Assembly (NCBI GenBank): GCA_036785375.1
Contig: JAWMAR010000508.1
Span: 1,302,001 to 1,366,000 of the forward strand
Reading direction: 5' to 3'
DNA length: 64,000 nucleotides
Source of the DNA: Leucoraja ocellata
Taxonomy: Eukaryota
A program made the position numbers and the translations under genes. A model generated the notes under the pieces. That model searched no databases. It was not told the DNA's origin and saw only the letters and a program-made list of their open reading frames with translations. Of the stretch, positions 2,912 through 62,129 are shown in pieces (within the stretch, counting starts at the first letter, position 1; each line of letters opens with the position of its first letter).

Positions 2912-3074
2912 CACGTTAAAGGGAGGTGTGGAGGGACCGGAGGGGAAGGGGTTACAGAGACAAAAAGAGTATCGGGAACAGAGTGAGTTACATAGAGAGG
3001 GGGTTAGGAGCAGCTGTCAAATTATATTCTGCAGTCTGCTTTCTTTGTCTATTGTAATACCCCTTGAACACATT

Positions 3075-3432
3075 AGGAATGTTACAACATTTGGCGATTT
3101 TAAAAATCAAGCCTGTAATTTATCCCATCAGATAAAACATGAAAAGAATTGTAATGTGATACCTAATTCACTTTCATATCTTCAGTATTAAAAAGTTATG
3201 GTCATTTTCACACTCGGAAATTAGTATCTTATTCCCTAGTGCTTTTCCTATCAATGTTACAACATTTGAGATTTAAAAAATCAAGTCTGCAATTTATCCC
3301 ATCAGATAAAGCATAAAAAGAAGTTTAATTTGACACCTAATTCACTTTCATATCTCAAGTAATAAATCAATTATGGCCATTTTCATACTCGGAAATTAGC
3401 ATCTTGTTCCCTATTGATTTTCTATGGACATA
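3075..3432 (+). mobile_element. Two tandem left-end fragments of the ~1-kb non-autonomous DNA transposon
   Basis: aatgttacaacattt...aaaaatcaag...ttatcccatcagataaa occurs twice; matches the starts of 11171 and 27048. Confidence 0.8.
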
Positions 3433-3433
3433 A

Positions 3434-4277: not shown

Positions 4278-4414
4278 TGTGTCTATGGTTTAGGAAAAAT
4301 CAACATCTACATTGTCTTCCTGCGCAGCAATTCAACGAGATTGGTCGCTGGAGTTTGACTGCAATTACTTTCTCTTCCAGATCGGGTAACTGACGGGATA
4401 TCTGGGATCGGACA

Positions 4415-4454
4415 ATGATCGGGAGATCATTCTTCCTCCTCTCCCTTCTCCAAG
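4415..4454 (+). CDS. Siglec-like gene 1: signal-peptide exon (MIGRSFFLLSLLQ); exon starts at 4381
   Basis: Acceptor ttctcttccag|4381; ATG at 4415; donor CAAG|gtacc; joins the V exon to give MIGRSFFLLSLLQAVVSG/QW; identical peptide at 62130. Confidence 0.85.
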
Positions 4455-4636
4455 GTACCATCAGCAGCAACTCAGAAGTATTTATGGGCGAGGGGGCTTT
4501 AACTGGTTGGCTGCCAGCGACTAGCGGAGTTCCGTAGGGGTCGGTGCTGGGGCTGCTATGATCGTTTCGCTGAATACCTCCGTTCAGTCCTCCTGGACCT
4601 ACCTGATCTCCCGGTTGCCAAACACTTTAATTACCC

Positions 4637-6815: not shown

Positions 6816-7059
6816 TTTTGGGGCGCCACAACTTTCCTGGCGGGCTGCCAGCCACTGTAGCGGGAGCTACACAGTTTGCTCATAACACCGCACACAGCCC
6901 AACACACGCAGACATGTCTTAAAATAAGTTTCTGCAGAGTTGCAGTGAGATGTACATGAGATGTTTATAGACACCACTGTACCTCCTCCAACTACCCAAA
7001 GATGTTTCAAACAACGAACTTGGGTGTTTTCGCGAGAGCTCCGACCCACGCACCTCCGA

Positions 7060-7768
7060 GCTGTGGGGGGGGGGGGGGGGGTGAGGTGGGGAGTGACACA
7101 CACTGTGGGAGTGGGGGTTGAGGTGGGGAGTGACACACTGTGGGAGGGAGTGACACACTGTGGGTGGGAGTGACACACACTGTGGGAGGGGGTGAGGTGG
7201 GGAGTGACACACATTGTGGGAGTGGGGGGGGTGAGGTGGGGAGTGACACACACTGTGGGGGGGGGGTTGAGGTGGGGAGTAACGCACATTGTGGGAGTGG
7301 GGGGTGAGGTGGGGAGTAACACACACTGTGGGAGGGGGGGTTGAGGTGGGTGACGCACTGTAGGAGGGAGTGACGCACTGTGGGAGGGAGTGACGCACTG
7401 TGGGAGGGGCGGTGAGGAGGGAATGACGCACTGTGAGAGGGGGGTGAGGTGGGAGTGACGCACTGTGGGAGGGGGTTGAGGTGGGAGTGACGCACTGTGG
7501 GAGGGAGTGACGCACTGTGGGAGGGAGTGACACACTGTGGGTGGGAGTGACACACTGCGGGAGTGACACACACTGTGGGGGGGGGGGGCGTGAGTGACAC
7601 ACTGTGGGTGGGAGTGACACACTGTGGGTGGGAGTGACACACTGTGGGTGGGAGTGACACACTGCGGGAGTGATACACTGTGGGAGGGACACACACTGTG
7701 GGAGGGGGGGGGGTGAGGTGGGGAGTGACACACTGTGTGGGGGGGGGGGGGGTGAGGAGTGAGGCTCT
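7060..7768. repeat. G-rich minisatellite (units such as GGGAGTGACACACTGTG), intron after the signal exon
   Basis: About 25-30 variant units; ends gtgaggagtgaggctct, as does the paralogous array at 63280-64000. Confidence 0.95.
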
Positions 7769-7892
7769 ACCAATACACCACCATGCCACTCTTCCCCGCT
7801 CTGTACACACCAGGCCCACGGCGCAGGATATAATGTGTGGAGAGTGAGTCCAGTGAACTGACAGGGTGTTCACTGCTAAAGATTGTTCCCTC

Positions 7893-8195
7893 AGACGGTG
7901 GAGGGCTCTACCCGAGCCAGCTGTCTGCCCCTTTTCCGGGGTTACGTCCGTGCCCGGGTGGGATTAGAAAGGGAATATGCCCTATCTGTGGGCACCCTGA
8001 GGGAGTTCCGGGAACGCCGGGCTCCGCAGGGTGTTGAATGTATCCTCAATAAGGATTCTATCATAATTGTATAATAGTTTATTATGGATATATGTTTGTA
8101 TTGTATTTATGGTGGTGGGTTCTGGCTTGTTTATTGTAGTGTAAATATTATTTTTTAATAATCGAATAAATGTTTTTGATTTAAAAAAAAACAAA
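7893..8195 (+). mobile_element. Tx1-like (L1 clade) 3' fragment with poly(A)
   Basis: CLPLFRGYVRARVGLERE..GTLREFRERRAPQGVECIL resembles the Tx1 ORF2 C-terminus; AATAAA followed by an A-run. Confidence 0.6.
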
Positions 8196-8390: not shown

Positions 8391-8950
8391 TCTCTGGTGG
8401 TGAATCTCTGGAACTCTCTGCCACAGAGGGTAGTTGAGGCCAGTTCATTGGCTATATTTAAGAGGGAGTTAGATGTGGCCCTTGTGGCTAAGGGGATCAG
8501 GGGGTATGGAGAGAAGGCAGGTACGGGATACTGAGTTGGATGATCAGCCATGATCATATTGAATGGCGGGTGCAGGCTCGAAGGGCCGAATGGCCTACTC
8601 CTGCACCTAATTTCTATGTTTCTATGTTTCTATGAATCCATTGTTTGGTAGTTGCAAACGTTGCCAATTAAGAGTTAAGATTTAGCTGAAAGTTAAAGTA
8701 AACATAAACGTTTTCAGTCTTGTTTTAAAAGTGGTCAAAGTTGAGGCAAGTCTTAAATCTTCAGGAAGTTTATTCCAGCTATTTGTTGCATAGTAACTAA
8801 ATCCTGCTTTCCATGTTTTGTATTTAACCATATAACCATATAACCATATAACAATTACTTAACAGAAACAGGCCATCTCGGCCCTACAAGTCCGTGCCGA
8901 ACAATTACAAAAAAAAAACAAAAACAAAATCTTGTTCCTTCTCTCCTCAG

Positions 8951-9317
8951 CCGTGGTGTCGGGACAGTGGACTGCGGACAATCCACCACATGTGACAGCG
9001 CAGAATGGTTTGTGTGCACGGATCCCGTGTCACTACAGCCACCCGTCGACTCTGAACGATAAACCGCGGTTTGGAGTCTGGTTTAACAGCGAGACGCTGG
9101 ACTTCACGTCTGTAGCCTTTTTCTCCGAGACTGACATCACAGTATTACCAAAGTTTCTGCATCGGACCCGGCTGTCAGGAGTCCTGAGAGACAACGACTG
9201 CTCCCTGGTTATAGACAACGTCACTCAGGAAGACGCAGGTCCTTATTTTTTCAGGGTCGATTCCTCGACGGCCAAAATTATTACAACTATCAGCCTGCAA
9301 CACAGCTCCAGTAACTG
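8951..9317 (+). CDS. Siglec-like gene 1: V-set Ig exon (two 1-nt deletions, near 9260 and 9310)
   Basis: ctcctcag|CC..; LCARIPC, GVWF, NDCSL, DAGPYFFRV (Siglec Cys pattern and F-strand Arg, AGG 9253-9255); donor ACTG|gtaag; 367 nt, i.e. 2 short of 369. Confidence 0.92.
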
Positions 9318-11170: not shown

Positions 11171-12209
11171 TAGCAATGTTACAAAATTTTGAGATTTAAA
11201 AAATCAAGTCTGCAATTTATCCCATCAGATAAAGCATAAAAAGAAGTTTAATTTGACACCTAATTCACTTTAATATCTCAAGTATTTAAAAAGTTATGGC
11301 CATTTTCATACTCGGAAATTAGCATCTTGTTCCCTATTGATTTTCTATGGACATAACAAAAAAGCTGTGATCATGGACAGTCAAAAGCCCATAACCTTCT
11401 TAAAAATTAAGAGAACTGAATGAAATTTTCAGTTATCATAGATTGAAGCATTCTGAAACAAATATAAAATAATCTTTCTTGGATGACCTGAAATTAACGC
11501 ATATAATTAGTTAGTTACCCAATTGTAGCTAATTTCAAATTTCAATTACTAGATCTAAACATCTATCCATTTCTTAATAAATGATTAACATTTTTAAATA
11601 GTCCAAGTGTCCAAATAATATTCACAAATAATTCACAATAAAACATGATTTTTAAATCTCATTTACATCAATTTATAGGCCAAATGGAAGGAATTTAGTG
11701 TTCAATTGCAGTAAATTAAAGTCAATTTTAAATCAGCTTTCTAGTGGGTTCCTGTGAACGTGCTGGTTTAGAACGTTCACATTGCGCTGGATTTGTGCCT
11801 CAAATGCCCCGAAAAATACTGCGGGATATAAAGAGCCCAAAATGAACTACTCGCTATAGAAAACGTTATATACAGGGTTCTTAAGAAGCCCCTTTTAATG
11901 TAAAAATAAGGTACATACCTTTAATTGTTTGCTTTATAAAACCCTGGGGCTGCGAGAGGTCGCAGGTTGAGAGAGTGATTTTAAAACTATTATAACTATT
12001 ATTCGATGCCTATAAAACTAATAATACCTTTTGCGACGGGGTCTTTCAGCGATTTTTCGTTAATGATTTACTAGGCTGAACATTTTCGATTGCAACAGCC
12101 TAGTAAAAATCGCGTTTTAAACCCGCCCCCTCTAAACAGCGCCAAAATCGCGCACACGGGCTGGGGCAGATTCTCAACGACGATTCAGGTAGGTTTTGTA
12201 ACATACCTA
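11171..12209 (+). mobile_element. ~1.04-kb non-autonomous DNA transposon (hAT-like TAG..CTA ends, 7-bp TSD)
   Basis: TIRs tagcaatgttacaaaa / ttttgtaacataccta (14/16 match); TSD ttttaag on both sides; near-identical copy at 27048. Confidence 0.9.
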
Positions 12210-12401
12210 TTTTAAGGTGTGTGTTTTCACACTTCTATACCATTTACCCGATGGGAGAGGGGAGAAGAGGGAGTGAGACTGATCCTTGATAATCTGGAGG
12301 TGTTAATAAAAATATTATTTTCCCTGTGGGACTGGGATTGCCATGTGAGCCGATGTATCTCGTGATATTTACCTAACAGTATCTGTTTCTGTGTGTGTTA
12401 G

Positions 12402-12695
12402 ATTTCACAGATAAACCCACGATATTCCCTGCTGAAATGGTGGCAGGTCAGCCTGTGAACGTGACCTGCGTCTTCAACAGCACGTGTGATGGAACAGCCC
12501 CCACCTTAACCTGGGTCACCCCCGCTGATGATCCACCATCAGCCTCACGCAGCGTAACTCAGCAGGGAGACACTCTGACATATACTTCTGTTCTGTACCT
12601 GACCCCAGCGCTCAAACATCACGGGCAAAACCTCACCTGCAGAGTCACATACCCAACCGTCTCATCCGAGCAGATCCTCACAATGGCTGTTCAAT
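12402..12695 (+). CDS. Siglec-like gene 1: first C2-type Ig exon
   Basis: gtgttag|AT TTC ACA..; DFTDKPTIFP..VTCVFNSTCDGTAPTLTW..HHGQNLTCRVTYP..AVQ; donor CAAT|gtaag; 294 nt, phase 1-1. Confidence 0.93.
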
Positions 12696-12750: not shown

Positions 12751-13150
12751 NNNNNNNNNNNNNNNNNNNNNNNNNNNNNNNNNNNNNNNNNNNNNNNNNN
12801 NNNNNNNNNNNNNNNNNNNNNNNNNNNNNNNNNNNNNNNNNNNNNNNNNNNNNNNNNNNNNNNNNNNNNNNNNNNNNNNNNNNNNNNNNNNNNNNNNNNN
12901 NNNNNNNNNNNNNNNNNNNNNNNNNNNNNNNNNNNNNNNNNNNNNNNNNNNNNNNNNNNNNNNNNNNNNNNNNNNNNNNNNNNNNNNNNNNNNNNNNNNN
13001 NNNNNNNNNNNNNNNNNNNNNNNNNNNNNNNNNNNNNNNNNNNNNNNNNNNNNNNNNNNNNNNNNNNNNNNNNNNNNNNNNNNNNNNNNNNNNNNNNNNN
13101 NNNNNNNNNNNNNNNNNNNNNNNNNNNNNNNNNNNNNNNNNNNNNNNNNN
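12751..13150. other. Assembly gap (400 N)
   Basis: Run of N. Confidence 1.
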
Positions 13151-14913: not shown

Positions 14914-15957
14914 TAGATAGGGTAGACAGCCAGAACCTTGTGTTGCCTGGGTGGAAATATCAAAGACTTGAGGGCTTAGTTTTAAGTTGACAGGGGCAAG
15001 TTTTCTATGCATATAGTGAGGGTCTCAGGGACATGCTAGAGGCAGAAAACATCTTCCAGATGTTGGGCGAGTCCAGAACCAGGGGCCACGGTTTAAGAAT
15101 AAGGGGTAAGCCATTTAGAACGGAGATGAGGAAACACATTTTCTCACAGAGAGTTGTGAGTCTGTGGAATTCTCTGCCTCAGAGGGAGGTGGAGGCTGGT
15201 TTTCTGGATACTTTCAAGAGAGAGCTAGATAGGGCTCGCTATATTTAAGAGGGAGTTAGATGTGGCCCTTGTGGCTAAGGGGATCAGGGGGTATGGAGAG
15301 AAGGCAGGTACAGGATACTGAACCTGCACCGCCATTCAATATGATCATGGCTGATCATCCAACTCAGTATCCCATCCCTGCCTTCTCTCCATACACCCCA
15401 GATCCCTTGAGCCACAAAGGCCACATCTAACTCCCTCTTAAATATACCCAATGAACTGGCCTCAACTACTTTCTGTGGCAGCGATTTTTTCTCATTTCGG
15501 TCCTGAAATACTTACCCCTTTTCCTTAGACTGTGTGACCCCTTGTCCTGGACTTCCCCAACATCGGGAACAATCTTCCTGCATCTAGCTGGTCCAACCTC
15601 TTAAGAATTGTGTAATATTATATAAGCAGTGCTTTAGTTAAGAGGGGCAGTGCTTTAGTTAAGGTACAGTGGGTTAAAGGGGCAGTGCTTTAGTTAAGGT
15701 ACAGTGGGTTAAAGGTGCAGTTCTTTAGTAAAGGTACAGTGAGCCAAGGGTACAGTGGGTTAAAGGTACAGTTCTTTAGTAAAGGTACAGTGAGCCAAGG
15801 GTACAGTGGGCTAAAGGTACAGTGCTTTTTGTTTATATAATAAAGGTGCAGTTTAAAGGTCACGAGGGAGCAGCTGTTGTGAGTCAGATACCTGCTGATT
15901 TCTCCCAGCAGTTTCTATTGTGTTATACTGGTATCAGATCCAGGGTAATGCGGGAGA

Positions 15958-16889
15958 ATGACAGTCAGAGCAGTATACTGTTCTGGATGTCAGATGTGGG
16001 AGGTCATGGTTTCGGATGGCCCTCCGGACATCCACATCTGCACCAGGTGCAGCGAGATGGGGCTCCTAAGGGACCGTATTAGGATCCTGGAGCAGCAGCT
16101 CGATGACCTCGCTCTGATCAGGGAGAGTGAGGAGGTCATAGAGGGGAGTTATAGAGAGGTGGTCACTCCAAAACCACGGGAGAGAGACATGTGGGTCACG
16201 TTAAGGAAGGGCAAGGGGCAGAGGCAGGAACGGGTGAGTACTCCAATGTCGGTACACCTCGCAAGTAAGTACTCCTGTTTGAGTACGGATGGGGGTAACA
16301 GCCTACCCGGGGGTAGTGACAGCGGACGGGCCTCCAGCACAGAGACCGGCCCTGTTGCTCCAAAAGCTAGGGAAAAAAGAGGGCCATAGTAATTGGGGAC
16401 TCTATTGTTAGGGGGTCGGATAGGCGATTCTGTGGACGCAGTCGGGAGACCAGGATGGTGGTCTGCCTCCCTGGTGCCAAGGTCTCGGACGTGTCTCAAC
16501 GCATCCAAGATATCCTTAAATCAGAGGGAGAGGAGCCTGAGGTCGTGGTACATATAGGTACCAATGACATAGGAAAAACAAGGGAAGAGGTCCTGAAGGG
16601 AGGATTTAGGGAGTTGGGAGGAGAGTTAAGAAAAAGGACCAAAAAGGTAACCATATCAGGATTACTGCCTGTGCCACGCGACAGTGAGAGTAGGAATGGA
16701 GCGAGGTGGAGGATAAATGCGTGGCTGAAAGACTGGTGCAGAGGGCAGGGATTCAAGTTCCTGGATCATTGGGACTTCTTTTGGGGAAGGTGGGACCTGT
16801 ACAGAAAGGATGGGTTGCACTTGAACCCGAGGGGGACCAATATCCTAGCGGGGAAATTTGCAAAGGCAGCTGGGGAGACTTTAAACTAG
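15958..16889 (+). pseudogene. CR1 ORF1 (Zn-finger plus SGNH/GDSL esterase), frameshift near 16385
   Basis: CSGCQMW..CTRC; VIGDSIVRG, CLPGA, HIGTND, DGLH blocks. Confidence 0.88.
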
Positions 16890-19681
16890 AATGGTTGGGG
16901 CGAGGGACTCAAATAGCGAAAGGTAGTAGACAGAATGGGAGGCAGGAAGCAGAAATGGGAAGCACTCGGACACAAGAGGAGAAAGAAAAAAAAGGAAATA
17001 AACAGAGAATAAGAGACGGGGGTTTTCTTAAATGTGCATATTTTAATGCTAGGAGCATTGTAAGAAAGGTTGATGAGCTTAGAGTCTGGATAGACACCTG
17101 GAAGTATGATGTTGTGGCGATCAGTGAAACGTGGTTGCAGGAGGGCTGTGATTGGAAACTAAATATTCCAGGATTTCGCTGCTTCAGGTGTGATAGAATT
17201 GGAGGGGCAAGAGGTGGAGGTGTTGCATTGCTAGTCAGGGAAGATATTATAGCAGTGCTTTGGCAGGATAGATTGGAGGGCTCATCTAGGAAGGCTATTT
17301 GGGTGTAATTGAGAAGTGGGAAAGGTGTAGCAACTCTTATAGGGGTGTATTATAGACCGCCAAACGGGGAACGAGAATTGGAAGAGCAAATATGTAAGGA
17401 GATAGCAGATATTAGTAGTAAGCACAAGGTAGTGATTGTGGGAGATTTCAACTTTCCACACATAGACTGGGAAACACATTCTGTAAATGGGCTGGAAGGG
17501 TTGGAGTTTGTAAAATGTGTGCAGGATAGTTTTTTGCAGCAATACATAGAGGTACCTACTAGAGGAGGGGCAGTGCTGGACCTCCTGTTAGGAAATGAGA
17601 TGGGACAGGTGGCGGAGGTATGCGTTGGGGAGCACTTCGGGTCCAGTGATCACAATACCATTAGTTTCAAGATAATTATGGAGAGGGTCAGAACTGGACC
17701 TAGGGTTGAGATTTTTGATTGGAGAAAGGCTAACTTTGATGAGATGCGAGATGATTTAAAAGGAGTGAACTGGGACATTTTGTTTTATGGGAGATAAAAA
17801 GAGGGAGATCTACAATAATTATAGGCAGCATGAAGTAAATGAGGTGCTTGAGGAGTATAAGGAATGTAAAAAGAATCTTAAGAAAGAAATTAGAAAAGCT
17901 AAAAGAAGATATGAGGTTGCTTTGGCAAGTAAGGTGAAAGTCAATCCACTATTAATAGCAAAAGGATAACGAGGGATAAAATTGGTCCATTGGAGAAACA
18001 GAGTGGACAGCTATCTGCAGAGCCAAAAGAGATGGGGGAGATATTGAACATTTTTTTTTCTTCGGTATTCACCAAGAAGAAGGATATTGAATTATGTGAG
18101 GTAAGGGAAACTAGTAGAGTAGCTATGGATACTATGAGGTTCAAAGTAAAAGAAGTACTGACACTTTTGAAAAATATAAAAGTGGATAAGTCTCCAGGTC
18201 CTGACAGGATATTCCCTAGGACATTGAGGGAAGTTAGTGTAGAAATAGCCGGGGCTATGACAGAAATATTTCAAATGTCATTAGAAACGGGAATAGTCCC
18301 CGAGGATTGGCGTACTGCGCATGTTGTTCCATTGATTAAAAAGGGTTCTAAGAGTAAACCTAGCAATTATAGACCTGTTAGTTTGACTTCAGTGGTGGGC
18401 AAATTAATGGAAAAGATACTTAGAGACAATATATATAAGCATCTAGATAAACAGGGTCTGATTAGGAACAGTCAACATGGATTTGTGCCTGGAAGGTCAT
18501 GTTTGACTAATCTTCTTGAATTTTTTGAAGAGGTTACTAGGAACATTGACGAGGGTAAAGCAGTGGATGTTGTCTATATGGACTTTAGTAAGGCCTTTGA
18601 CAAGGTTCCTCATGGAAGGTTGGTTAAGAAGGTTCAACTGTTGGGTATAAATGCAGGAATAGCAAGATGGATTCAACAGTGGCTGAATGGGAGAAGCCAG
18701 AGGGTAATGGTGGATGGCTGTTTATCGGGTTGGAGGCAGGTGACTAGTGGGGTGCCTCAGGGATCTGTGTTGGGTCCTTTGTTGTTTGTCATGTACATCA
18801 ATGATCTGGATGAAGGTGTGGTAAATTGGATTAGTAAGTATGCAGATGATACCAAGATAGGGGGTGTTGTGGATAATGAAGAGGATTTCCAAAGTCTACA
18901 GAGTGATTTAGGCCATTTGGAAAAATGGGCTGAAAGATGGCAGATGGAGTTTAATGCTGATAAATGTGAGGTGCTACACCTTGGCAGGACAAATCAAAAT
19001 AGGACGTACATGGTAAATGGTAGGGAATTGAAGAATACAGTTGAACAGAGGGATCTGGGTATAACCGTGCATAGTTCCTTGAAGGTGGAATCTCATATAG
19101 ATAGGGTGGTAAAGAAAGCTTTTGGTATGCTAGCCTTTATAAATCAGAGCATTGAGTATAGAAGCTGGGATGTAATGTTAAAATTGTACAAGGCATTGGT
19201 GAGACCAAATCTGGAGTATGGGGTACAATTTTGGTCGCCAAATTATAGGAAGGATGTCAACAAAATAGAGAGAGTACAGAGGAGATTTACTAGAATGTTG
19301 CCTGGGTTTCAACAACTAAGTTACAGAGATAGGTTGAATAAGTTAGGTCTTTATTCTCTGGAGCGCAGAAGGTTAAGGGGGGACCTGATAGAGGTCTTTA
19401 AAATGATGAGAGGGATAGACAGAGTTGATGTGGACAAGCTTTTCCCTTTGAGAATAGGGAAGATTCAAACAAGAGGACATGACTTCAGAATTAAGGGACA
19501 GAAGTTTAGGGGTAATATGAGGGGGAACTTCTTTACGCAGAGAGTGGTGGCGGTGTGGAATGAGCTCCCAGTGGAAGTGGTGGAGGCAGGTTCATTGGTA
19601 TCATTTAAAAATAAATTGGATAGGCATATGGATGAGAAGGGAATGGAGGGTTATGGTACGAGTGCAGGCAGGTGGGACTAA
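16890..19681 (+). pseudogene. CR1 ORF2 (AP endonuclease plus RT); stop at about 17306, deletions at about 17790 and 17945
   Basis: YFNARS, SETW, GDFN, SDH; [12 protein letters not shown]; lesions seen by comparison with the intact copy at 58444-61391. Confidence 0.92.
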
Positions 19682-19815: not shown

Positions 19816-20097
19816 ATGCTCCACGGATTCAATCAATCACTTCCCCCGACAACGTGAATAATTCCGGAGTCAATGTAAAGGAAGGAAACTCTGTAGAGTT
19901 CCTCTGCTCCGTTCAGAGTTTCCCAGCATCTAACCTGACGTGGATACATCTCGATGCCACACTGAACACAACAGGATCCAGCAACGAGCTGTGGTTGAAA
20001 ATCCTTCAAGTGACTCGGCAGGACGCTGGGGACTATGAGTGTGTGGCGGCGAATGAGCATGGGACAGGGAAGGGGAATGTGACCCTCATTGTAGAAT
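19816..20097 (+). CDS. Siglec-like gene 1: second C2/I-type Ig exon
   Basis: gtctttag|AT GCT CCA; YAPRI..EGNSVEFLCSVQSFPASNLTW..DAGDYECVAANEHG..VTLIVE; donor GAAT|gtgag; 282 nt. Confidence 0.93.
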
Positions 20098-20199
20098 GTG
20101 AGTAGACACATGTCTCGTCTCTGTGAACATAAATGAGAAGTCAGTGGAATATATTGTGTTGTACCGGGATATTATGGTATATCCCGGTAAAGGAGGGTA

Positions 20200-21085
20200 A
20201 AGAAGAGGATTTCCAAAGTCTACAGAGTGATTTAGGCCATTTGGAAAAATGGGCTGAAAGATGGCAGATGGAGTTTAATGCTGATAAATGTGAGGTGCTA
20301 CACCTTGGCAGGACAAATCAAAATAGGACGTACATGGTAAATGGTAGGGAATTGAAGAATACAGTTGAACAGAGGAATCTGGGAATAACCGTGCATAGTT
20401 CCTTGAAGGTGGAATCTCATATAGATAGGGTGGTAAAGAAAGCTTTTGGTATGCTAGCCTTTATAAATCAAAGCATTGAGTATAGAAGCTGGGATGTAAT
20501 GTTAAAATTGTACAAGGCATTGGTGAGACCAAATCTGGAGTATGGTGTACAATTTTGGTCGCGCAATTATAGGAAGGATGTCCACAAAATAGAGAGAGTA
20601 CAGAGGAGATTTACTAGAATGTTGCCTGGGTTTCAACAACTAAGTTACAGAGATAGGTTGAACAAGTTAGGGCTTTATTCTTTGTAGCACAGAAGGTTAA
20701 GGGGGGACTTGATAGAGGTATTTAAAATGATGAGAGGGATAGACAGAGTTGACGTGGATAAGCTTTTCCCACTGAGAGTAGGGAAGATTCAAACAAGGGG
20801 GCATGACTTGAGAATTAAGGGACAGAAGTTTAGGGGTAATATGAGGGGGAACTTCTTTACTCAGAGAGTGGTAGCGGTGTGGAATGACCTTCCAGTGGAA
20901 GTGGTGGAGGCAGGTTCATTGGTATCATTTAAAAATAAATTGGATAGGCATATGGATGAGAAGGGAAAGGAGGTTTATGGTATGAGTGCAGGCAGGTGGG
21001 ACTAAGGGGAAAAATGTGTTCGGCACGGACTTGTAGGGCCGAGATGGCCTGTTTCCGTGCTGTAATTGTTATATGGTTATATGGT
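20200..21085 (+). mobile_element. CR1-A 3' fragment
   Basis: RT C-terminal ORFs 20133-20687 and 20709-21005; tail. Confidence 0.9.
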
Positions 21086-21351
21086 ATGGCATTTCTGCCT
21101 CTCCCCCACACACTCTCTCCTCTTGTAAGATGAAGATTAGATAAGGTTAGACACAAAAAGCTGGAGTAACTCAGCGGGACAGGCAGCATCTCTGGAGAGA
21201 AGGCAGGGGTGATGTGCCGAGTCGAGACCCTTCTTCAGACCGAGTCAGGGGAGATGGGGATACAGAGATAAGGAAGTGCAAGGTGTGAAAAGGAGACAGA
21301 AAAAATGTTGAATTGTCAGCTGGGAGAAGTTGACAACAAGTCAAAGATAAA

Positions 21352-22101
21352 ATGCAGATGCAATATAATGTGGATAAATGTGAGGTTATCCATTTTGGTG
21401 GCAAAAACGGGAAAGCAAACTATTATCTAAATGGTGGCCGATTGGGAAAGGGGGAGATGCAGCGAGACCTGCGTGTCATGGTACACCAGTCATTGAAGGT
21501 AGGCATGCAGGTGCAGCAGGCAGTAAAGAAAGCGAATGGTATGTTAGCTTTCATTGCAAAAGGATTTGAGTATAGGAGCAGGGAGGTTCTACTGCAGTTG
21601 TACAGGGTCTTGGTGAGACCACACCTGCAGTATTGCGTACAGTTTTGGTCTCCAAATCTGAGGAAGGACATTATTGCCATAGAGTGAGTGCAGTGACGGT
21701 TCACCAGACTGATTCCTGGGATGTCAGGACTGTCTTATGAAGAAAGACTGGATAGACTTGGTTTATACTCTCTAGAATTTAGGAGATTGAGAGGGGATCT
21801 TATAGAAACTTACACAATTCTTAAGGGGTTGGACAGGCTAGATGCAGGAAGATTGTTCCCGATGTTGGGGAAGTCCAGGACAAGGGGTCACAGCTTAAGG
21901 ATAAGGGGGAAATCCTTTGAAACCGAGATGAGAAGAACTTTTTTCACACAGAGAAGGGTAGTTGAGGCCAGTTCATTGGCTATATTTAAGAGGGAGTTAG
22001 ATGTGGCCCTTGTGGCTCAAGGGATCTGGGGTGTATGGAGGCTCGAAGGGCCGAATGGCCTCTACTCCTGCACCTAATTTCTATGTTTCTATGTTTCTAT
22101 G
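21352..22101 (+). mobile_element. CR1-B 3' fragment
   Basis: ORFs 21352-21687 and 21721-22077; TTTCTATG tail. Confidence 0.9.
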
Positions 22102-22493
22102 AAAGGTTCAGAGAGATATGGGCCAAATGGGACTTATTTAGATGGGACATCTTGGACGAGTTGGGCCGAATGGCCTGTTTGCGTGCTGTACCAATGCACA
22201 ACTCTGAAACAATGAAGGGTTAGGATGGAATGGATGTGGGGATGTGCAGAAGTGGAGGCCATCATCAGTAAACAGCCATTGAGACCTCAGAGGGACATGG
22301 CGTTGCTCAGAGAGAGGTGAGTGGTGGATCTCACTGCCCTCGGGATGGGTTGAGGCCACAGTAGAAGTAGATTTAGTGGGACATTCTGATAGATGAGGAA
22401 AGTAGGGTCAGTAGGACAAGATGGGCTGAATGGCCTGTTTCTGTTATGTAATTCCAGGTAGTGTGGTGCGAGAATCCTTTTTGCTACTCGGTC

Positions 22494-23202
22494 AAGATTC
22501 AAGATTCAAGATTCAATTTATTTGTCATTTGGACCCCTTGAGGTCCAAACGAAATGCCGTCAAAGCCCCCGGCTGGCGATGGCGATTGTCCCGCGGCCAT
22601 TAAAGCCACGCCGGGTGCTGCAAGGTCGCACACCGGTCTTGATGTTGGAGCCCCCGGCGTGCGCACGCAGAGTCCCGCAGCCATTCCAAGCCTCGCGGGG
22701 CGGTGCTGTAAGGCCCCGCTCCAGGAGCTCTTCGACCCCGCAACTCGGGCGGGAGAAGTCGCCGTTGCGGGTGCCCTGAAAAGCGGTCTCCCTCCAGGGA
22801 CCCGCGGGCTCCCGGTGCTGCCGTCCGCCAGACCCGCAGTTGCAGCCTCCGAATCTCCGGAGGTCGGGCCGTAGCAGCAGCAGCGCTCCACCACCGCTCC
22901 ACCCGCTCTGGACTCGGCCAGCTCCGCGACGGTGAGGTGAGTCGTCGGCACCAGAGCCCCCGGTCTTCCTGTTGGAGGCCGCTCCTCGTTGCAGCCCCAA
23001 CGACAACGGAGACCCAACAAAGAAAAGGTCGGTTCTCCCGTGCAGGGAGAGATTTAAAAGTTACCCCCTCCCTCCCACCCCACCCCCACCCCCCACACAC
23101 ACACATCAACAAAAAAATAACAAAAACTACATAAAAACATAGACAAAAAATAATAAAAACGCAGACGGGCTGCAGAGGCCGCTGCTGACGAGAGTCGCGC
23201 CG
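22494..23202 (-). mobile_element. GC-rich non-coding retroposon (copy B) with Rex1-like (TTGAATC)n tail
   Basis: Close match to 29816-30675 but with an internal ~140-nt deletion; short TSD cggtc. Confidence 0.75.
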
Positions 23203-23283
23203 GTCTGGGCTGGAGTTGAGGTTATGTTGTCTTGTCTGTTTGTCAGAGCTGGGCTTACATTGACTGCTTTCTCCACCCCTCAG

Positions 23284-23397
23284 TACGTGGCTCGGAAAGG
23301 TCCTGGAAATGCATCGTGGCCCTGATCGTTCTTGCCGTCATCTTCATAGGCGTAGTTCCTGTAATCGTCTGGGCAGAGTGTTGGCGCAACAAATGAG
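23284..23397 (+). CDS. Siglec-like gene 1: transmembrane exon, TGA at 23394-23396 just before the donor
   Basis: acccctcag|TA CGT..; LRGSERSWK-CIVALIVLAVIFIGVVPVIVWA-ECWRNK*; 114 nt, phase 1-1, G|gtgcgg. Confidence 0.82.
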
Positions 23398-23596
23398 GTG
23401 CGGGATGATCTGGAAACTGTCCGAATGTCTTCACTGCCATTTACTCACCGGAACGAGAAAGAGGGGAGGTACACACTGCGTCCGCCTAAAATCAGGGCCC
23501 TCTCCAATCATAACCGCCCCCCCCCCTCCCCACCCCACCGCTACAACTGTGTTTGGGAGAGGGGCAGGGCAGATTGCCCAAGTATCCTGGACCTGA

Positions 23597-24325
23597 TGTT
23601 TACTCAGAGAGTGGTAGCGGTGTGGAATGAGCTTCCAGTGGAAGTGGTGGAGGCAGGTTCGTTGGTATCATTTAAAAATAAATTGGATAGGCATATGGAT
23701 GAGAAGGGAATGGAGGGTTATGGTATGAGTGCAGGCAGGTGGGACTAAGGGGAAAAAAAGTTGTTCGGCACGGAGTTGTAGGGCCGAGATGGCCTGTTTC
23801 CGTGCTGTAATTGTTATATATGGATATATGGTTTATATCTCATCCATAGACATAGAAACATAGACAATAGGTGCAGGAGTAGGCCATTCGGCCGTTCGTG
23901 CCTGCACCATTCACCATTCAATATGATCACGGCTGATCATCCAACTCAGAATTCCTGTACCTGCTTTCTCTCCATACCCCCTGATCCCTTTAGCCACAAG
24001 GGCCACATCTAACTCCCTCTTAAATATAGCCAATGAACTGTGGCCTCAACTACCTTCTGTGGCAGAGAATTCCACAGATTCACCACTCTCTGTGTGTGAA
24101 AAATATTTTTCTCATCTCCGTCCTAAAAGATTTCCCCCTTATCCTTAAACTGTGTGGCCCCTTGTTCTGGACTTCCCCAACATCAGGAACAATCTTCCTG
24201 CATCTAGCCTGTCCAACTCCTTAAGAATTTTGTAAGTTTTTATAAGATCCCCCCTCAATCTTCTAAATTCTAGCGAGTACAAGCCGAGTCTATCCAGTCT
24301 TTCTTCATATGAAAGCCCTGACATC
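23597..24325. mobile_element. CR1-A 3' end (+) and CR1-B 3' fragment (-), tail to tail
   Basis: FTQRVVAVWNELP..GRWD plus tail; catagaaacatag start of the minus copy. Confidence 0.85.
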
Positions 24326-24620
24326 CCGATGCTGGGATGGGGGAGAGTTTAGTTACTTTTTAGTTTATTGTGACATGTGGGAAGGGGTTGGATCCGTGAG
24401 GAGAGAGTGGGGAGGTGATTGGGTCTATAGGCAGTGTGGGGAGTGGGAGATAGTTTTGCTCCATGGTGGGAGGGAATGGGGAGGAGATGGGAGTGTGGAC
24501 TGAGATAGATTGGGGTTGGAGTTTTGGTCCATGTGGAGTGGGGACAATGGGAGTGAAGTATTGGTAACAGCACGGAGATTGTTCCCAGATTATGTCGTTT
24601 TTGCAGATGCGGCAAAAGGA

Positions 24621-26600
24621 TCATCGCAAAAGGATTTGAGTCTAGGAGCAGGGAGGTTCTACTGCAGTTGTACAGAGTATTGGTGAGACCACACCTGGAG
24701 TATTGCGTACAGTTTTGGTCTCCTAATCTGAGGAAAGACATTATTGCCATAGAGGGAGTACAGAGAAGGTTCACCAGACTGATTCCTGGGATGGCAGGAC
24801 TTTCATATAATAATAATAATAATTGTATTTATAAAGCACTTTAAACAACTGCAGTTGCCACATAGTGCTGTACATGAGAACTCATAACCATATAACCATA
24901 TAACAATTACAGCACGGAAACAGGCCATCTCGGCCCTACAAGTCCGTGCCGAACAACTTTGTTTCCCCTTAGTCCCACCTGCCTGCACTCATACCATAAT
25001 CCTCCATTCCCTTCTCATCCATATGCCTATCCAATTATTTTTAAATGATACAAGATACAAGATACAAGATACAAGATAAATTTAATTCTCACGTGTGCCA
25101 GATGGCACAGTGAAATGAATTCCCATACAGCCATACAATAAAAATAAACAGGACTCAACACAATATAGAATTCAACACAAAACATCCCCACACAGCAGAA
25201 CCAGTTTCCCACTGTGTGGGAAGGCACCAAAGTCAGTTCATTGATACCAATGAACCTGCCTCCACCACTTCCACTGGAAGCTCATTCCACGCCGCTACCA
25301 CTCTCTGAGTAAAGAAGTTCCCCCTCATATTACCCCTAAACTTCCGTCCCTTAATTCTGAAGTCATGTCCTCTTGTTGGAATCTTCCCTATTCTCAAAGG
25401 GAAAAACTTGTCCACATCAACTCTGTCTATCCCTCTCATCATTTTAAAGACCTCGATCAAGTCCCCCCTTAACCTTCTGCGCTCCAGAGAATAAAGACCT
25501 AACTTATTCAACCTATCTCTGTAACTTAGTTGTTGAAACCCAGGCAACATTCTAGTAAATCTCCTCTGTACTCTCTCTATTTTGTTGACATCCTTCTTAT
25601 AATTGGGTGACCAAAATTGTACACCATACTCCAGATTTGGTCTCACCAATGCCTTGTACAATTTTAACATTACATCCCAGCTTCTATACTCATGGACAAG
25701 AAGTTATTACAAACCATTAAAAACTGTAAAACAAAGGACTATAAAACAGTAAAAAAGTCATTAAAAGCACTAAAAACAGGAGCAATGTCTCAGACAGTAT
25801 CGAAAAGCCAGAGAATAAAAATGAGTTTTTGGGGTGCACAAAATTGCTGGAGAAACTCAGCGGGTGCAGCAGCATCTATGGAGCGAAGGAAATAGGCGAC
25901 GTTTCGGGCCGAAACCCTTCTTCAGACTGATGGGGGGTGGGGGGGGGGGGGGGAGAAGGAAGGAAAAGGGGAGGGGGAGGAGGAGGAGCCCGAGGGCGGG
26001 CGGATAGGAGGGTGGGAGGAGACAGCTCGAGGGTTAAGGAAGGGGAGGAGACAGCAAGGGCTAGCAAAATTGGGAGAATTCAATGTTAATGCCATCCGGA
26101 CGCAAGGTCCCCAGGCGGAATATGAGGTGCTGTTCCTCCAATTTCCGCTGTTGCTCACTCTGGCAATGGAGGAGACCCAGGACAGAGAGGTCGGATTGGG
26201 AATGGGAGGGGGAGTTGAAGTGCTGAGCCACCGGGAGGTCAGGTTGGTTATTGTGGTCTGAGCGGAGGTGTTCGGCGAAACGATCGCCCAACCTCCGCTT
26301 CGTCTCCCCGCTGTAAATCAGCTGACATCTAGAGCAGAGGATGCAGTACATGAGGTTGGAGGAGATGCAGGTGAACCTTTGTCAGAGTTTTTAGGGTGGA
26401 TTTGAAGATGGACAGTGAGGGGGCCTGTCTGATGTGCAACGGCGGGGTGTTCCAGAGTGCCGGAGCAGCAACAGAGAAGGCTCTATCCCCTCTGAGCTTC
26501 CGCTTAGACCTTGGTACCTCAAGGAGCAGCTGATCAGCTGACCTGAGGCACCAGGCAGGAGAGTATGGGTGGAGCAGCTCAGAGAGGTAAGGCGGGGCTT
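24621..26600. mobile_element. Nested TE stack: CR1-B, L2 (-), CR1-A (-, 24886-25692), short retroposon tail (25048-25245), Penelope (-, 25833-26385)
   Basis: L2 RT end LRSADQLLLEVPRSKRKLRGDRAFSVAAPALWN on the minus strand with (TTA)n tail; TSDs actcat and gagttttt; GIY-YIG ORF 26061-26351. Confidence 0.8.
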
Positions 26601-26910
26601 ACTAAATTCCTAGAGAGTATAAACCAAGTCTATCCAGTCTTTCTTCATTTCTTTCTTTCGAAAGGATGAACCTCTTTAGCCAGAATGTCGTTTAATCAGT
26701 GGAATTCATTGCCACAGAGGGTTGTGGAGGCCAAGTCAGTGGATAATCTTAAGACAGAAATAGATAAATTCTTGATTAGAACGGGTGTCAAGGGTTATGT
26801 GGAGAAGGCAGGAAAATAGGATTAGGAGGCATGATTGAATGGCGCAGTAGACTAGATGGGCTGAATGGCCTAATTCTACTCCTATAACCTGTGAATTTCT
26901 TTCCCCACAG

Positions 26911-26967
26911 GAGCTGCATCTCGGAAACCGTGATCTGTACAGCGAGCTCAAGCCCAGCTACAAATGA
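26911..26967 (+). CDS. Terminal cytoplasmic exon ELHLGNRDLYSELKPSYK* (distal part of an ITAM, DAP12-like)
   Basis: Strong acceptor tttctttccccacag|GAG; phase-0 reading gives xxEL-x7-YSEL..YK*. Confidence 0.7.
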   Translation, partial: ELHLGNRDLYSELKPSYK

Positions 26968-27047
26968 GCCTCTGCTCAACCCTTCTCTGTCCACTCTGCC
27001 CACTTTCTCTGACGTTTCTCTCTGCCCATCTCTCTCTTTCCTTACTC

Positions 27048-28087
27048 TAGCAATGTTACAAAATTTTGAGATTTAAAAAATCAAGTCTGCAATTTATCCC
27101 ATCAGATAAAGCATAACAATAAGTTTAATTTGACACCTAATTCACTTTCATATCTCAAGTAATAAAAAAAGTTATGGCCATTTTCATACTCGGAAATTAG
27201 CATCTTGTTCCCTATTGATTTTCTATGGACATAACAAAAAAGCTGTGATCGTGGACAGTCAAAAGCCCATAACCTTCTTAAAAATTAAGAGAACTGAATG
27301 AAATTTTCAGTTATCATAGATTGAACCATTCTGAAACAAATATAAAATAATCTTACTTGGATGACCTGAAATTAAAGCATATAATTAGTTAGTTACCCAA
27401 TTGTAGCTAATTTCAAACTTCAATTACTAGATCTAAACATCTATCAATTTCTTAATAAATGATTAACATTTTTAAATAGCCTAAGTGTCCAAATAATATT
27501 CACAAATAATTCACAATAAAACATGATTTTTAAATCTCATTTACATCAATTTATAGGCCAAATGGAAGGAATTTAGTGTTCAATTGCTGTAAATTAAAGT
27601 CAATTTAAATCAGCTTTCTAGTGGGTTCCTGTGAACGCGCTGGTTTAGAACGTTCACATTGCGCTGGATTTGTGCCCTCAAATGCCCAGAAAAATATTGC
27701 GGGATATAAAGAGCCCAAAATGAACTATTCGCTATAGAAAACTTTATATACAGGGTTCTTAAGAAGCCCCTTTTAATGTAAAAATAAGGTACATACCTTT
27801 AATTGTTTGCTTTATAAAACCCTGGGGCTGCGAGAGGTTGCGGGTTTAGAGAGTGATTTTTAAACTACTATAACTATTATACAAGGCCATAAAAACTAAT
27901 AATACCTTTTGCGACGGGGTCTTCCAGCGATTTTCCGTTAATGATTTACTAGGCTGAACATTTTCGATTGGAACAGCCTAGTAAAAATCGCGTTTTAAAC
28001 CCGCCCCCTCTAAACAGCGCCAGAATCGCGCACACGGGGTGGGGCAGATACTCAGCGACAATTCAGGTAGGTTTTGTAACATACCTA
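27048..28087 (+). mobile_element. Second copy of the ~1.04-kb non-autonomous DNA transposon
   Basis: Same TIRs; TSD cttactc on both sides. Confidence 0.9.
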
Positions 28088-28509
28088 CTTACTCTCTATA
28101 ATCAATCTCCCTTCCATTGACTTCGTCTTCACCTCACGCTGCCTCGGCAAGGCCAGCAGCCCAGACCATCACACACGAACCAACCTCCCTTCCATCGCCT
28201 CCATCTACACCTCACGCAGCCCCGGCAAGGCCAGCAGCAAAATCAAGGACCAGTCTCATCCCCGGCCACTCCCTCTTCTCTCCTCTCCCATCGGGCAAGA
28301 GGTACAGAAGTGTGAAAACGAACGCACACCTCCAGATTCAGGGAGTGTTTCTTCCCGGCTGTTATCAGGCAACTGAACCATCCTGCCACAACAAGATGTG
28401 TACCCCGAGGAATTTGTAGCTGGAGACGCGCTCCACCTCAGTCCCGTTTATATGGATGGGGGTATGTCTGCCCCCTCTGACCTTCCTGAAATCAGTGTGG
28501 ACGGGTGAT

Positions 28510-58354: not shown

Positions 58355-61300
58355 CCATATAACCGTATAACCATATAACAATTACAGCACGGAAACAGGC
58401 CATCTCGGCCCTACAAGTCCATGCCGAACAAATTTTTTCCCCCTTAGTCCCACCTGCCTGCACTCGTACCATAACCCTCCCTTCCCTTCTCATCCATATG
58501 CCTATCCAATTTATTTTTAAATGATACCAATGAACCTGCCTCCACCACTTCCACTGGGAGCTCATTCCTCACCGCCACCACTCTCTGCGTAAAGAAGTTC
58601 CCCCTCATATTACCCCTAAACTTCTGTCCCTTAATTCTGAAGTCATGTCCTCTTGTTTGAATCTTCCCTATTCTCAAAGGGAAAAGCTTGTCCACATCAA
58701 CTCTGTCTATCCCTCTCATCATTTTAAAGACCTCTATCAGGTCCCCCCTTAACCTTCTGCGCTCCAGAGAATAAAGACCTAACTTATTCAACCTATCTCT
58801 GTAACTTAGTCGTTGAAACCCAGGCAACATTCTAGTAAATCTCCTCTGTACTCTCTCTATTTTGTTGACATCCTTCCTATAATTTGGCGACCAAAATTGT
58901 ACCCCATACTCCAGATTTGGTCTCACCAATGCCTTGAACAATTTTAACATTACATCCCAGCTTCTATACTCAATGCTCTGATTTATAAAGGCTAGCATAC
59001 CAAAAGCTTTCTTTACCACCCTATCTATATGAGATTCCACCTTCAAGGAACTATGCACGGTTATACCCAGATCCCTCTGTTCAACTGTATTCTTCAATTC
59101 CCTACCATTTACCATGTACGTCCTATTTTGATTTGTCCTGCCAAGGTGTAGCACCTCACATTTATCAGCATTAAACTCCATCTGCCATCTTTCAGCCCAT
59201 TTTTCCAAATGGCCTAAATCACTCTGTAGACTTTGGAAATCCTCTTCATTATCCACAACACCCCCTATCTTGGTATCATCCGCATACTTACTAATCCAAT
59301 TTACCACACCTTCATCCAGATCATTGATGTACATGACAAACAACAAAGGACCCAACACAGATCCCTGAGGCACCCCACTAGTCACCTGCCTCCAACCCGA
59401 TAAACAGCCATCCACCATTACCCTCTGGCTTCTCCCATTCAGCCACTGTTGAATCCATCTTGCTATTCCTGCATTTATACCCAACAGTTGAACCTTCTTA
59501 ACCAACCTTCCATGAGGAACCTTGTCAAAGGCCTTACTAAAGTCCATATAGACAACATCCACTGCTTTACCCTCGTCAATTTCCCTAGTAACCTCTTCAA
59601 AAAATTCAAGAAGATTAGTCAAACATGACCTTCCAGGCACAAATCCATGTTGACTGTTCCTAATCAGACCCTGTTTATCTAGATGCTTATATATATTGTC
59701 TCTAAGTATCTTTTCCATTAATTTGCTCACCACTGAAGTCAAACTAACAGGTCTATAATTGCTAGGTTTACTCTTAGAACCCTTTTTAAACAATGGAACA
59801 ACATGCGCAGTACGCCAATCCTCGGGGACTATTCCCGTTTCTAATGACATTTGAAATATTTCTGTCATAGCCCCGGCTATTTCTACACTAACTTCCCTCA
59901 ATGTCCTAGGGAATATCCTGTCAGGACCTGGAGACTTATCCACTTTTATATTTTTCAAAAGTGTCAGTATTTCTTTTACTTTGAACCTCATAGTATCCAT
60001 AGCTACTCTACTAGTTTCCCTTACCTCACATAATTCAATATCCTTCTCCTTGGAGAATACCGAAGAAAAAAAATTGTTCAATATCTCCTCCATCTCTTTT
60101 GGCTCTGCAGATAGCTGTCCACTCTGTCTCTCCAATGGACCAATTTTATCCCTCGTTATCCTTTTGCTATTAATATAGCTGTAGAAACCCTTTGGATTGA
60201 CTTTCACCTTACTTGCCAAAGCAACCTCATATCTTCTTTTAACTTTTCTAATTTCTTTCTTAAGATTCTTTTTACATTCCTTATACTCCTCAAGCACCTC
60301 ATTTACTTCATGCTGCCTATAATTATTGTAGATCTCCCTCTTTTTCCGAACAAGATGTCCAATTTCCCTTGAAAACCAGGGCTCTTTACAATTTTTACTG
60401 TTTCCTTTCAACCGAACAGGAACATAAAGATTCTGTACTCTTAAAATTTCCCCTTTAAATGTCCTCCATTTCTCTTCTACATCTTTCCCATAAAACAAAA
60501 TGTCCCAGTTCACTCCTTTTAAATCATCTCGCATCGCATCAAAGTTAGCCTTTCTCCAATCAAAAATCTCAACCCTAGGTCCAGTTCTGACCCTCTCCAT
60601 AATTATCTTGAAACTAATGGTATTGTGATCACTGGACCCGAAGTGCTCCCCAAAGCATACCTCCGCCACCTGTCCCATCTCATTTCCTAACAGGAGGTCC
60701 AGCACTGCCCCTCCTCTAGTAGGTGCCTCTATGTATTGCTGCAAAAAACTATCCTGCACACATTTTACAAACTCCAACCCATCCAGCCCATTTACAGAAT
60801 GTGTTTCCCAGTCTATGTGTGGAAAGTTGAAATCTCCCACAATCACTACCTTGTGCTTACTACTAATATCTGCTATCTCCTTACATATTTGCTCTTCCAA
60901 TTCTCGTTCCCCGTTTGGCGGTCTATAATACACCCCTATAAGAGTTGCTACACCTTTCCCACTTCTCAATTCCACCCAAATAGCCTCCCTAGATGAGCCC
61001 TCCAATCTATCCTGCCAAAGCACTGCTGTAATATCTACCCTGACTAGCAATGCAACACCTCCACCTCTTGCCCCTCCAATTCTATCACACCTGAAGCAGC
61101 GAAATCCTGGAATATTTAGTTTCCAATCACAGCCCTCCTGCAACCACGTTTCACTGATCGCCACAACATCATATTTCCAGGTGTCTATCCAGACTCTAAG
61201 CTCATCAACCTTTCTTACAATGCTCCTAGCATTAAAATATGCACATTTAAGAAAACCCCCGTCTCTTATTCTCTGTTTATTTCCTTTTTTTTCTTTCTCC

Positions 61301-61693: not shown

Positions 61694-62129
61694 TCTGACT
61701 AAAGAAATTCCACGTCATTTCCTTCCTAAAAGAACGTCCTTTAATTCTGAGACTGTGAACTCTCCCACTAGTGGAAATATCCTCTCCACATCCACACTCT
61801 CCAAGTCTTTCACTGTTCGGTAAGTTTCATTGAGGTCCCCCCTCATTCTTCAAAACTCCAGCGAGTAAAGGCCCAGTGCCGTCAAACGCTCATTGTATGT
61901 AAACCCACTCATTGCTATAAACCTCCTCTGATCCCATCCAGAGCCTGCACATGCTTCATCTGATATGGGGCTCAAAATTGCTCACAATATTCCAAATGTG
62001 GCCTGACCACTGCCTTGTAGAACCTCAGCATTACATCCGTTTCGTTTTATGTATATTGGTCGCTGGAGTTTGACTGCAATTACTTTCTCTTCCAGATCGG
62101 GTAACTGACGGGATATCTGGGATCGTACA

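Follow-up and report, generated by a model that had tools for sequence, protein, structure and literature searches.

A probable tail-less Siglec-like gene of a skate, with a relic ITAM exon behind its stop codon

In mammals, the activating sialic acid-binding immunoglobulin (Ig)-like lectins Siglec-14, -15 and -16 have a basic residue in the transmembrane (TM) segment and borrow an ITAM (immunoreceptor tyrosine-based activation motif) from the adaptor DAP12; to our knowledge, all described activating Siglecs take their ITAM from DAP12 via a charged TM residue. DAP12 itself (TYROBP) is encoded by its own small adaptor gene and has an Asp-bearing TM segment. A built-in ITAM or ITAM-like motif, with a first YxxL module that is split in phase 0, is described for CEACAM3 and the Xenopus ITAM-type CEACAMs, which are also paired receptors of the Ig family, in a study of CEACAM ITAMs (PMC5112662). 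Here we analyse a 64-kb stretch of Leucoraja ocellata DNA (contig JAWMAR010000508.1, positions 1,302,001 to 1,366,000; the window, in which all positions below are numbered), which carries one Siglec-like gene on its + strand, consisting of leader, V, C2, I-set/C2 and TM exons followed by an exon that starts at 26911 and resembles the second half of an ITAM. A preliminary description of this locus had proposed that the gene encodes a Siglec with a built-in, DAP12-like ITAM.

Reading frame and splicing at the terminal exon

The combined evidence makes it probable that the window gene is instead a tail-less member of a tandem skate Siglec-like family, with its ITAM exon lying after the stop codon, out of frame, and serving only as 3' untranslated region (3'UTR). 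The stalk and TM exon (23284-23397) reads RGSERSWKCIVALIVLAVIFIGVVPVIVWAECWRNK, with a six-residue tail (..KCIVALIVLAVIFIGVVPVIVWAECWRNK); it ends ..WAECWRNK and is followed by an in-frame TGA (23394-23396), one G and the donor GT at 23398. The frame of this exon is fixed by the preceding Ig exon (19816-20097), which ends in phase 1. The TM donor is likewise in phase 1 and, when joined to 26911, reads G|GA and then AASRKP*, not the ITAM frame, which would require an intervening exon with a phase-1 entry and, after ..Yx, a phase-0 exit. Two alternative donors in the TM exon before the TGA, GT at 23378 (phase 2) and GT at 23380 (phase 1), were considered and rejected, neither yielding the ITAM frame at 26911. 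The TM core (CIVALIVLAVIFIGVVPVIVWA) has no charged residue, as had been noted previously and as translation of the exon confirms. The predicted gene product, a type I membrane protein that has a six-residue tail, no tyrosine motif and an uncharged membrane core, would thus have no evident way of signalling alone.

The terminal exon was correctly recognised in the preliminary description: a pyrimidine-rich acceptor (..ttccccacag|) at 26910/26911 opens the reading frame ELHLGNRDLYSELKPSYK* at 26911-26967. The bare pattern AG|x[LI]x6-8Yxx[LI] occurs at 10 sites in the window (6 on the + strand and 4 on the - strand), and the motif alone is therefore uninformative; it is homology that makes the exon real. 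A search with the V exon of 1.84 billion representative sequences returned 677 proteins at E <= 0.001, the best 150 of which were examined, and brought up XP_051901316.1 (P0009), a RefSeq model from the sawfish Pristis pectinata named "MAG-like". This 415-residue protein has a V-C2-C2-TM order, ends ..VESLYQELRAGNRDLYSELKPSYN and contains a complete ITAM, ..ESLYQ|ELRAGNRDLYSELKPSYN. Its tblastn match to the window at 26908-26961 has 16/18 identical residues (the E value is 6.4e-05 for the full-length query, 8.2e-07 for the last 75 residues and 2.6e-07 for the last 48), the corresponding identities being 14/19 for the ITAM tail of P0235, 12/19 for P0166 and 10/18 for P0152. On this homology, the 26911 exon appears to descend from the second half of an ITAM that is still encoded by related batoid Siglec-like receptors. 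Against the Pfam ITAM profile (PF02189), P0009 reaches 18.7 bits and P0152 reaches 11.5 bits, which in either case is under the cut-off of 22.2.

Evidence on splicing comes from sequencing runs, 20 of 24 of which contain part of 26892-27480; those 20 are guessed to be RNA and none is recorded as RNA. Four runs (X1, X2, X12 and X24) were aligned to 23150-27550, three of them being contig runs and X24 a raw-read RNA run. Record 1 of X1 (413 nucleotides, nt) aligns over letters 105-216 with 23284-23395 and over letters 217-413 with 26909-27105; in record 16 of X2 (570 nt), the corresponding pieces are letters 290-401 (23284-23395) and letters 402-570 (26909-27077). Since an AG is common to both sides of the joint, the joint corresponds to the canonical 23397|GT..AG|26911. 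The two runs are from the same organism and from different studies. In both, the aligned pieces start precisely at the TM acceptor, the 104 and 289 letters upstream of them mapping off the intron, and none of the three contig runs shows any depth in the unique intron bins 23444-23590 and 24473-24619, where the X24 raw reads have depths of 0 and 0.01-0.08; the exact acceptor starts, together with the empty unique intron bins, identify these as spliced molecules. Two contig differences from the window in the TM exon, T>C at 23317 and G>T at 23349, yield exactly the A and the C by which the TM segment of P0230, a transcript-derived protein described below, is distinguished from that of the window, from which it follows that the spliced contigs represent P0230-type mRNA, with an open reading frame (ORF) ending ..RNK. 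Beyond the relic, the remainder of the terminal exon (26968-27105, as far as the contigs reach) lies from 27048 inside a repeated 1-kb element; the spliced contigs extend 30-58 nt into it, so that the 3'UTR goes on within a repeat. Separately, X24 covers the intron repeats at 23591-26383 at depths of hundreds to thousands on both strands and the exons not at all; ordinary RNA-seq of this locus is dominated by transposon transcripts.

Given a phase-1 joint behind an in-frame stop, no ITAM is translated from this gene. The proposal of a built-in-ITAM Siglec at this locus therefore fails on a point that the preliminary description had itself identified as decisive, as the phase-1 reading is that of the spliced contigs; nor can 26911 be taken as a phase-0 coding exon, a stop preceding the phase-1 donor and no first-half exon having been found. 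Only the second YxxL module is present, two modules 6-8 residues apart do not occur in one translated frame, and the motif lies outside the coding sequence, with the TGA before the donor and the phase-1 joint in the mRNA of a relative.

The intron (23398-26910) consists mostly of repeats, and no exon ending Yx|GT and able to supply the first YxxL was found in it by regular expression, three-frame reading or tblastn. Three-frame reading of the unique intron segments gave nothing resembling ..ESPYQ, and tblastn at E up to 100-200, with the ITAM tail of P0009 and with those of six ITAM-type proteins as queries, matched the known last exon only. The regular expression Yx|GT[AG] had 10 sites in 20100-26911, the 3 past the TM exon (24671, 24701 and 26121) falling in window repeats, and a weak tblastn match at 28211-28264 (E 0.17-0.45) was rejected as downstream, repeat-like sequence. 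Of separate interest is the start of the intron: in Rhinoraja longicauda, P0163, a LOW QUALITY model, continues from ..CRGKR into ..SGKCPNVFTGIYS, which matches 23398-23460 of the window intron in another frame (..SGNCPNVFTAIYS). P0163 would accordingly be a retained-intron model, with the intron start just past the TM exon apparently conserved between genera.

The ectodomain is that of a Siglec-like receptor, as the preliminary description had it. The V-set exon (8951-9317; Siglec-type, with YFFR), located by Pfam, a PDB search and tblastn with P0230, scores 35.3 bits against Pfam V-set (cut-off 26) and 30.6 bits against Ig_CD22 (cut-off 27), and 20 of its 24 PDB matches at E <= 0.001, including the best 19, are Siglec chains. 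The window GPYFFRVD aligns with GSYFFRVE of Siglec-5 (2zg1), the conserved arginine being present; in Siglecs, the arginine of the YFFR stretch has a role in sialic acid binding. The CEACAMs are another Ig family, and the window V domain matches Siglecs, not CEACAMs. The order of domains after V is that of the Siglec family, i.e. C2-set_2 (exon 12402-12695; phase 1 in and out; Pfam C2-set_2 40.7 bits; 95.1% identity to P0230 over 102 residues), Ig_3/I-set (exon 19816-20097; also entered in phase 1; Pfam Ig_3 51 bits and I-set 49.2 bits; 95.7% identity to P0230) and then a single TM segment. The leader exon (4415-4454) encodes MIGRSFFLLSLLQ plus one base (G) before its donor GT and was found as a tblastn match to the signal peptide of P0009; across the leader-V junction, G+CC gives the A of ..LLQAVVSGQW, identical to P0230.

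ITAM-tailed, tail-less and paired relatives

Tails were counted among 251 fetched relatives. An ITAM tail of the form Y.EL-x7-YS[DE][LI] is present in 11 of these, all RefSeq models, two being from Pristis pectinata (XP_051901316.1 and XP_051901315.1) and nine from Rhinoraja longicauda (XP_078251517.1, which ends ..FWAARCRGKRESSVAQPKEQKAEDGPVESPYQELRLGERDLYSDLNLRHK, and eight more). In a further ITAM-like model, XP_078251266.1, nine additional residues separate YQ from EL, and the C terminus is ..LYSELKPGYK; P0247, a partial model, stops exactly at ..ESPYQ. The ITAM-type relatives have a V-C2..-TM order followed by the tail and, by alignment, a hydrophobic TM core with no acidic or basic residue. 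Siglec-like receptors with a built-in ITAM are thus predicted to exist in batoids, in the form of annotated models, and it is to this extent, in two batoids, that the idea of a self-signalling Siglec class raised in the preliminary description stands, whereas it does not hold for the window gene. When the third Ig domain of Rhinoraja longicauda P0020 was used as a query, 88 proteins among 129 candidates matched at E <= 1e-5, all 88 being from sharks and rays. Siglec-like RefSeq models with ITAM-like tails were also observed in Hyla sarda (XP_056399881.1, P0104; ..YEELKGQRNDIYYNF..), Aquarana catesbeiana (XP_073457897.1, P0113; YTALRKRETEDEYDTL) and Amia ocellicauda (XP_066575221.1, P0141; YTSLDKSAVSSDYDTI), and built-in tyrosine pairs in Siglec-like tails may be more widespread than the batoids.

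The ending ..WA..R.K (..R[NS]K) is found in 6 of the 251 relatives. Three are RefSeq models, from Leucoraja erinacea (XP_055521810.1, "MAG-like", P0168), Amblyraja radiata (XP_032868303.1, "Siglec-12", P0225) and Rhinoraja longicauda (XP_078288158.1, "Siglec-13", P0214), and three are Logan transcript ORFs of 365 residues each (P0230, P0242 and P0243), from contigs of 1378-1550 nt, P0230 ending ..CCRNK. These tail-less batoid proteins are like the window gene in leader peptide, in V-C2-Ig-TM order, in having nearly the same TM segment and in the ending ..WA..R.K; they differ in that the V exon of the window is frame-shifted relative to theirs. P0230 is 95-96% identical to the window in the three Ig exons, with 5/37 residues differing in the TM segment (86.5% identity). 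The window exons are closest to the tail-less set: the third Ig exon is 95.7% identical to that of P0230 and 90.3% identical to that of Amblyraja P0225, as against 72-77% for the ITAM-type Rhinoraja models. As the tail-less ending is common to three genera, it is no private accident of this assembly.

The ITAM-tailed batoid models resemble the window gene in the homologous last exon (10-16 of 18-19 residues), in an alignable stalk, TM segment and ..FWA..CR.K, and in the uncharged TM core. Past the K, however, they go on with R|E.., ..ES[PL]YQ and an in-frame EL.. exon, whereas the window gene has a stop and is without the middle part; in the stalk-TM-tail alignment, its stop lies beneath the R of ..GKR|E.. 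in the ITAM type. A further type of tail is seen in Pristis, where P0009, with its ITAM, shares 332/360 residues (92%) with P0151 (..PLYCNM.., ..TEYAEI..), the two diverging at the stalk. The tyrosine motifs of the P0151 tail are like those of inhibitory Siglecs, and the combination of near-identical ectodomains with different tails points, in Pristis, to the paired-receptor pattern. The mammalian activating Siglecs (Siglec-14, -15 and -16) likewise belong to families with near-identical ectodomains and opposite tails; compared with them, the batoid ITAM type has its own ITAM and the window type has none.

The putative likeness of the 26911 exon to DAP12 would lie in the 7-residue spacer, the YSxL second module, the short C terminus and the split first YxxL. 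A word search with the 75-residue Pristis tail (proteins of 42-131 residues, exact 5-residue words) gave one candidate and none that scored, and a PDB search gave no adaptor and one unrelated dehydrogenase (E 0.45); these blanks show neither closeness to DAP12 nor distance from it. Two differences are clear: the window exon is spliced to a Siglec TM exon and not part of a small adaptor gene, and there is no Asp, and hence no counterpart of the acidic TM residue of DAP12, in the TM cores of the window gene or of its ITAM-type relatives. An exon boundary that splits the first YxxL is stated for every classical ITAM in one account (PMC4536121), and for the CEACAM ITAMs, including those of CEACAM3 and the Xenopus ITAM type, where a phase-0 intron does so, in another (PMC5112662); because the split is general to classical ITAMs, it is no pointer to DAP12. 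EL is where the exon in the window begins, and ..ESPYQ is where P0247, the partial model, stops, the exon borders of the ITAM type being deduced from proteins.

Proposed derivation of the tail-less form and alternative explanations

The tail-less form may have been derived from the ITAM type, the latter coming first. The starting point would be an ITAM-type gene such as is still annotated in Pristis and Rhinoraja. A stop would then have taken the place of the final complete codon in the TM exon, where the ITAM type has an R and then a phase-1-split codon; a single C-to-T change would suffice if the R codon was CGA. The short first-half exon, which ends ..ESPYQ and, judging from the models, would be ~65-71 nt long, entered in phase 1 and left in phase 0, would have been lost or skipped, with the TM exon coming to be spliced directly to the old second-half exon. 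The latter would now only provide 3'UTR, carrying the transcript towards its end.

The copy in the window has further lesions. Relative to P0230, its V exon has two 1-nt gaps, near 9261 and at 9310/9311, and tblastn with P0230 passes from frame 1 (8935-9261) to frame 3 (9246-9308). The frame-3 stretch 9261-9308 reads FLDGQNYYNYQPATQL, after which one more base is short before GTAACTG|gtaagt. The window's own V frame ends in phase 2, TG|, at the strong donor TG|GTAAGT and meets the A.. of the C2 exon, giving a stop at the V/C2 junction, such that the frame is not intact through all the exons. The window copy is most likely a transcribed pseudogene of the tail-less subtype.

Several observations weigh against the tail-less, untranslated interpretation, or at least against its extension to this copy. 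The spliced contigs differ from the window at 5/112 and 3/197 letters (X1) and at 4/169 letters (X2), and would come from a close relative, i.e. a paralogue or another species, not from the window copy. X12 has the window's letters at 23349, 26980 and 27003, at low depth only, with no joint listed for it; the runs that bear the joint are guessed to be RNA, and the raw-read RNA run X24 has no reads on the TM exon. The joint was taken from the table of aligned pieces and is not among the 15 joints listed of 246. Contigs drop rare isoforms, and there may be a minor form with an extra exon, which would still lie behind the TGA. The relic retains an open ITAM frame and is nearer to the sawfish exon (16/18) than the coding Rhinoraja exons are (12-14/19), which is odd for old untranslated sequence; its good preservation could mean that it was derived recently, that it changes slowly or that neighbours of the ITAM type have converted it. 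Both the exon borders of the ITAM type and its R codon are known from proteins only. With respect to the V exon, the two gaps could be assembly errors, and use of a weaker donor, 9310|GTAACT, may preserve the V frame as read in the window (in phase 1), but would replace the last strand of the V domain.

The alternative that survives best, which we regard as possible though on the doubtful side, is that the tail-less state is a functional design, the protein being a putative decoy or partner of ITAM- or ITIM-type paralogues (ITIM, immunoreceptor tyrosine-based inhibitory motif) and the exon being kept for 3'UTR or polyadenylation signals. The identical end residue of the tail-less models in three genera, the three Logan ORFs that are intact over 365 residues and the expression of the joint in two studies are all in keeping with such a role; the frame shift in the V exon of the window copy is not, and only a single sequence served to measure how well the relic is conserved. 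It is unlikely that the stop and the V-exon gaps are assembly errors or private variants of an otherwise intact gene. The lesions are all single-base, as such errors might be, but the stop position is common to six independent relatives, the direct phase-1 joint gives no ITAM even without the stop, and two gaps within 50 nt, neither of them in a long homopolymer, are improbable as errors.

It is more improbable still that a Yx exon has gone unrecognised between the TM exon and 26911 and that the gene thereby makes a self-signalling Siglec with a full ITAM. In favour of this, 26911 is by homology a true second-half ITAM exon, its ITAM frame is still open and ITAM-tailed relatives are present as models. 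Such an exon would, however, have to follow an in-frame TGA that precedes the only good donor of the TM exon, the last codons of which contain no phase-0 GT before the TGA; moreover, all three candidate Yx|GT sites in 23398-26910 lie within repeats, tblastn with six ITAM tails gives no match for the middle part, and the contigs link the TM exon straight to 26911. The short C terminus past the second YxxL and the location of TYROBP near CD22/MAG in mammals, as given in the preliminary description, might suggest that the 26911 exon is a separate small adaptor gene or pseudogene (TYROBP/DAP12-like) between tandem Siglec genes, but this is the least credible of the alternatives, as contigs of two studies show it joined by splicing to the Siglec TM exon, the same exon ends a Siglec-like protein in 11 RefSeq models, and no other adaptor exon was found in the window, there being no first-half exon and, except for 26911, no credible site among the 10 with the second-half pattern.

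We lean, by a modest degree, towards the existence of a batoid class of Siglecs with their own ITAM, an uncharged TM segment and no adaptor, accompanied by twins with inhibitory or switch motifs (ITIM/ITSM type; ITSM, immunoreceptor tyrosine-based switch motif) and by repeated tail-less offshoots that would arise by a stop at the last codon of the TM exon and loss of the first-half exon; on this view, the window locus would be a snapshot of that decay. Were this so, and were the ITAM forms expressed and Syk recruited by them, no adaptor-independent activating Siglecs would have preceded them. An own-tail ITAM lineage would imply that the Siglec family has used both solutions, as the CEACAMs and Fc receptors do, and would offer a simple system for studying how silent, activating and inhibitory forms turn over in a receptor cluster that evolves fast. 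Evidence for the class comes from automatic RefSeq models of two other batoids, not from the window, whose more modest contribution is an example of tail loss and a caution that a motif exon may look intact and yet go untranslated. A literature search found no description of Siglecs with their own ITAM, most subscription journals and supplements lying outside its scope; the built-in-ITAM Siglec class seems to be undescribed, though present in public RefSeq models, and akin to the known paired Ig receptors with an ITAM (CEACAMs).

The tandem unit and repeats in the window

The window is repeat-rich and has a single run of N (12751-13150). The leader exon of the next tandem gene (62130-62169, + strand), found by tblastn, encodes the same peptide as that of the first; it is the only exon of that gene in the window, no further Ig, TM or tail exon of the family having been found there, nor any second copy of the 26911 exon or of the Ig exons. 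Both leader exons, together with ~100 nt before the ATG, are nearly identical (4341-4520 and 62056-62235), and the sequences farther upstream are unrelated; these near-identical blocks are likely a shared promoter and 5'UTR block. Each of the two genes has, within its first intron and 1-2.5 kb downstream of its leader exon, long proline-, threonine-, cysteine- and valine-rich repeat ORFs (..PPTVCVTPHL..) on the - strand (6870-7963 and 63153-64000), which look like a tandem-repeat block belonging to the duplicated unit.

The ~1-kb element at 27048-28090 begins exactly at the end of the unique sequence of the terminal exon and has a 96% identical copy at 11171-12212, in the V/C2 intron, its first 188 nt recurring twice in tandem at 3074-3433. 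A long interspersed nuclear element (LINE) copy with an unbroken 1046-residue ORF (endonuclease and reverse transcriptase) occupies 58447-61584 on the - strand, and a broken copy of the same LINE lies at 15949-19678 on the + strand, in the intron preceding the third Ig exon.

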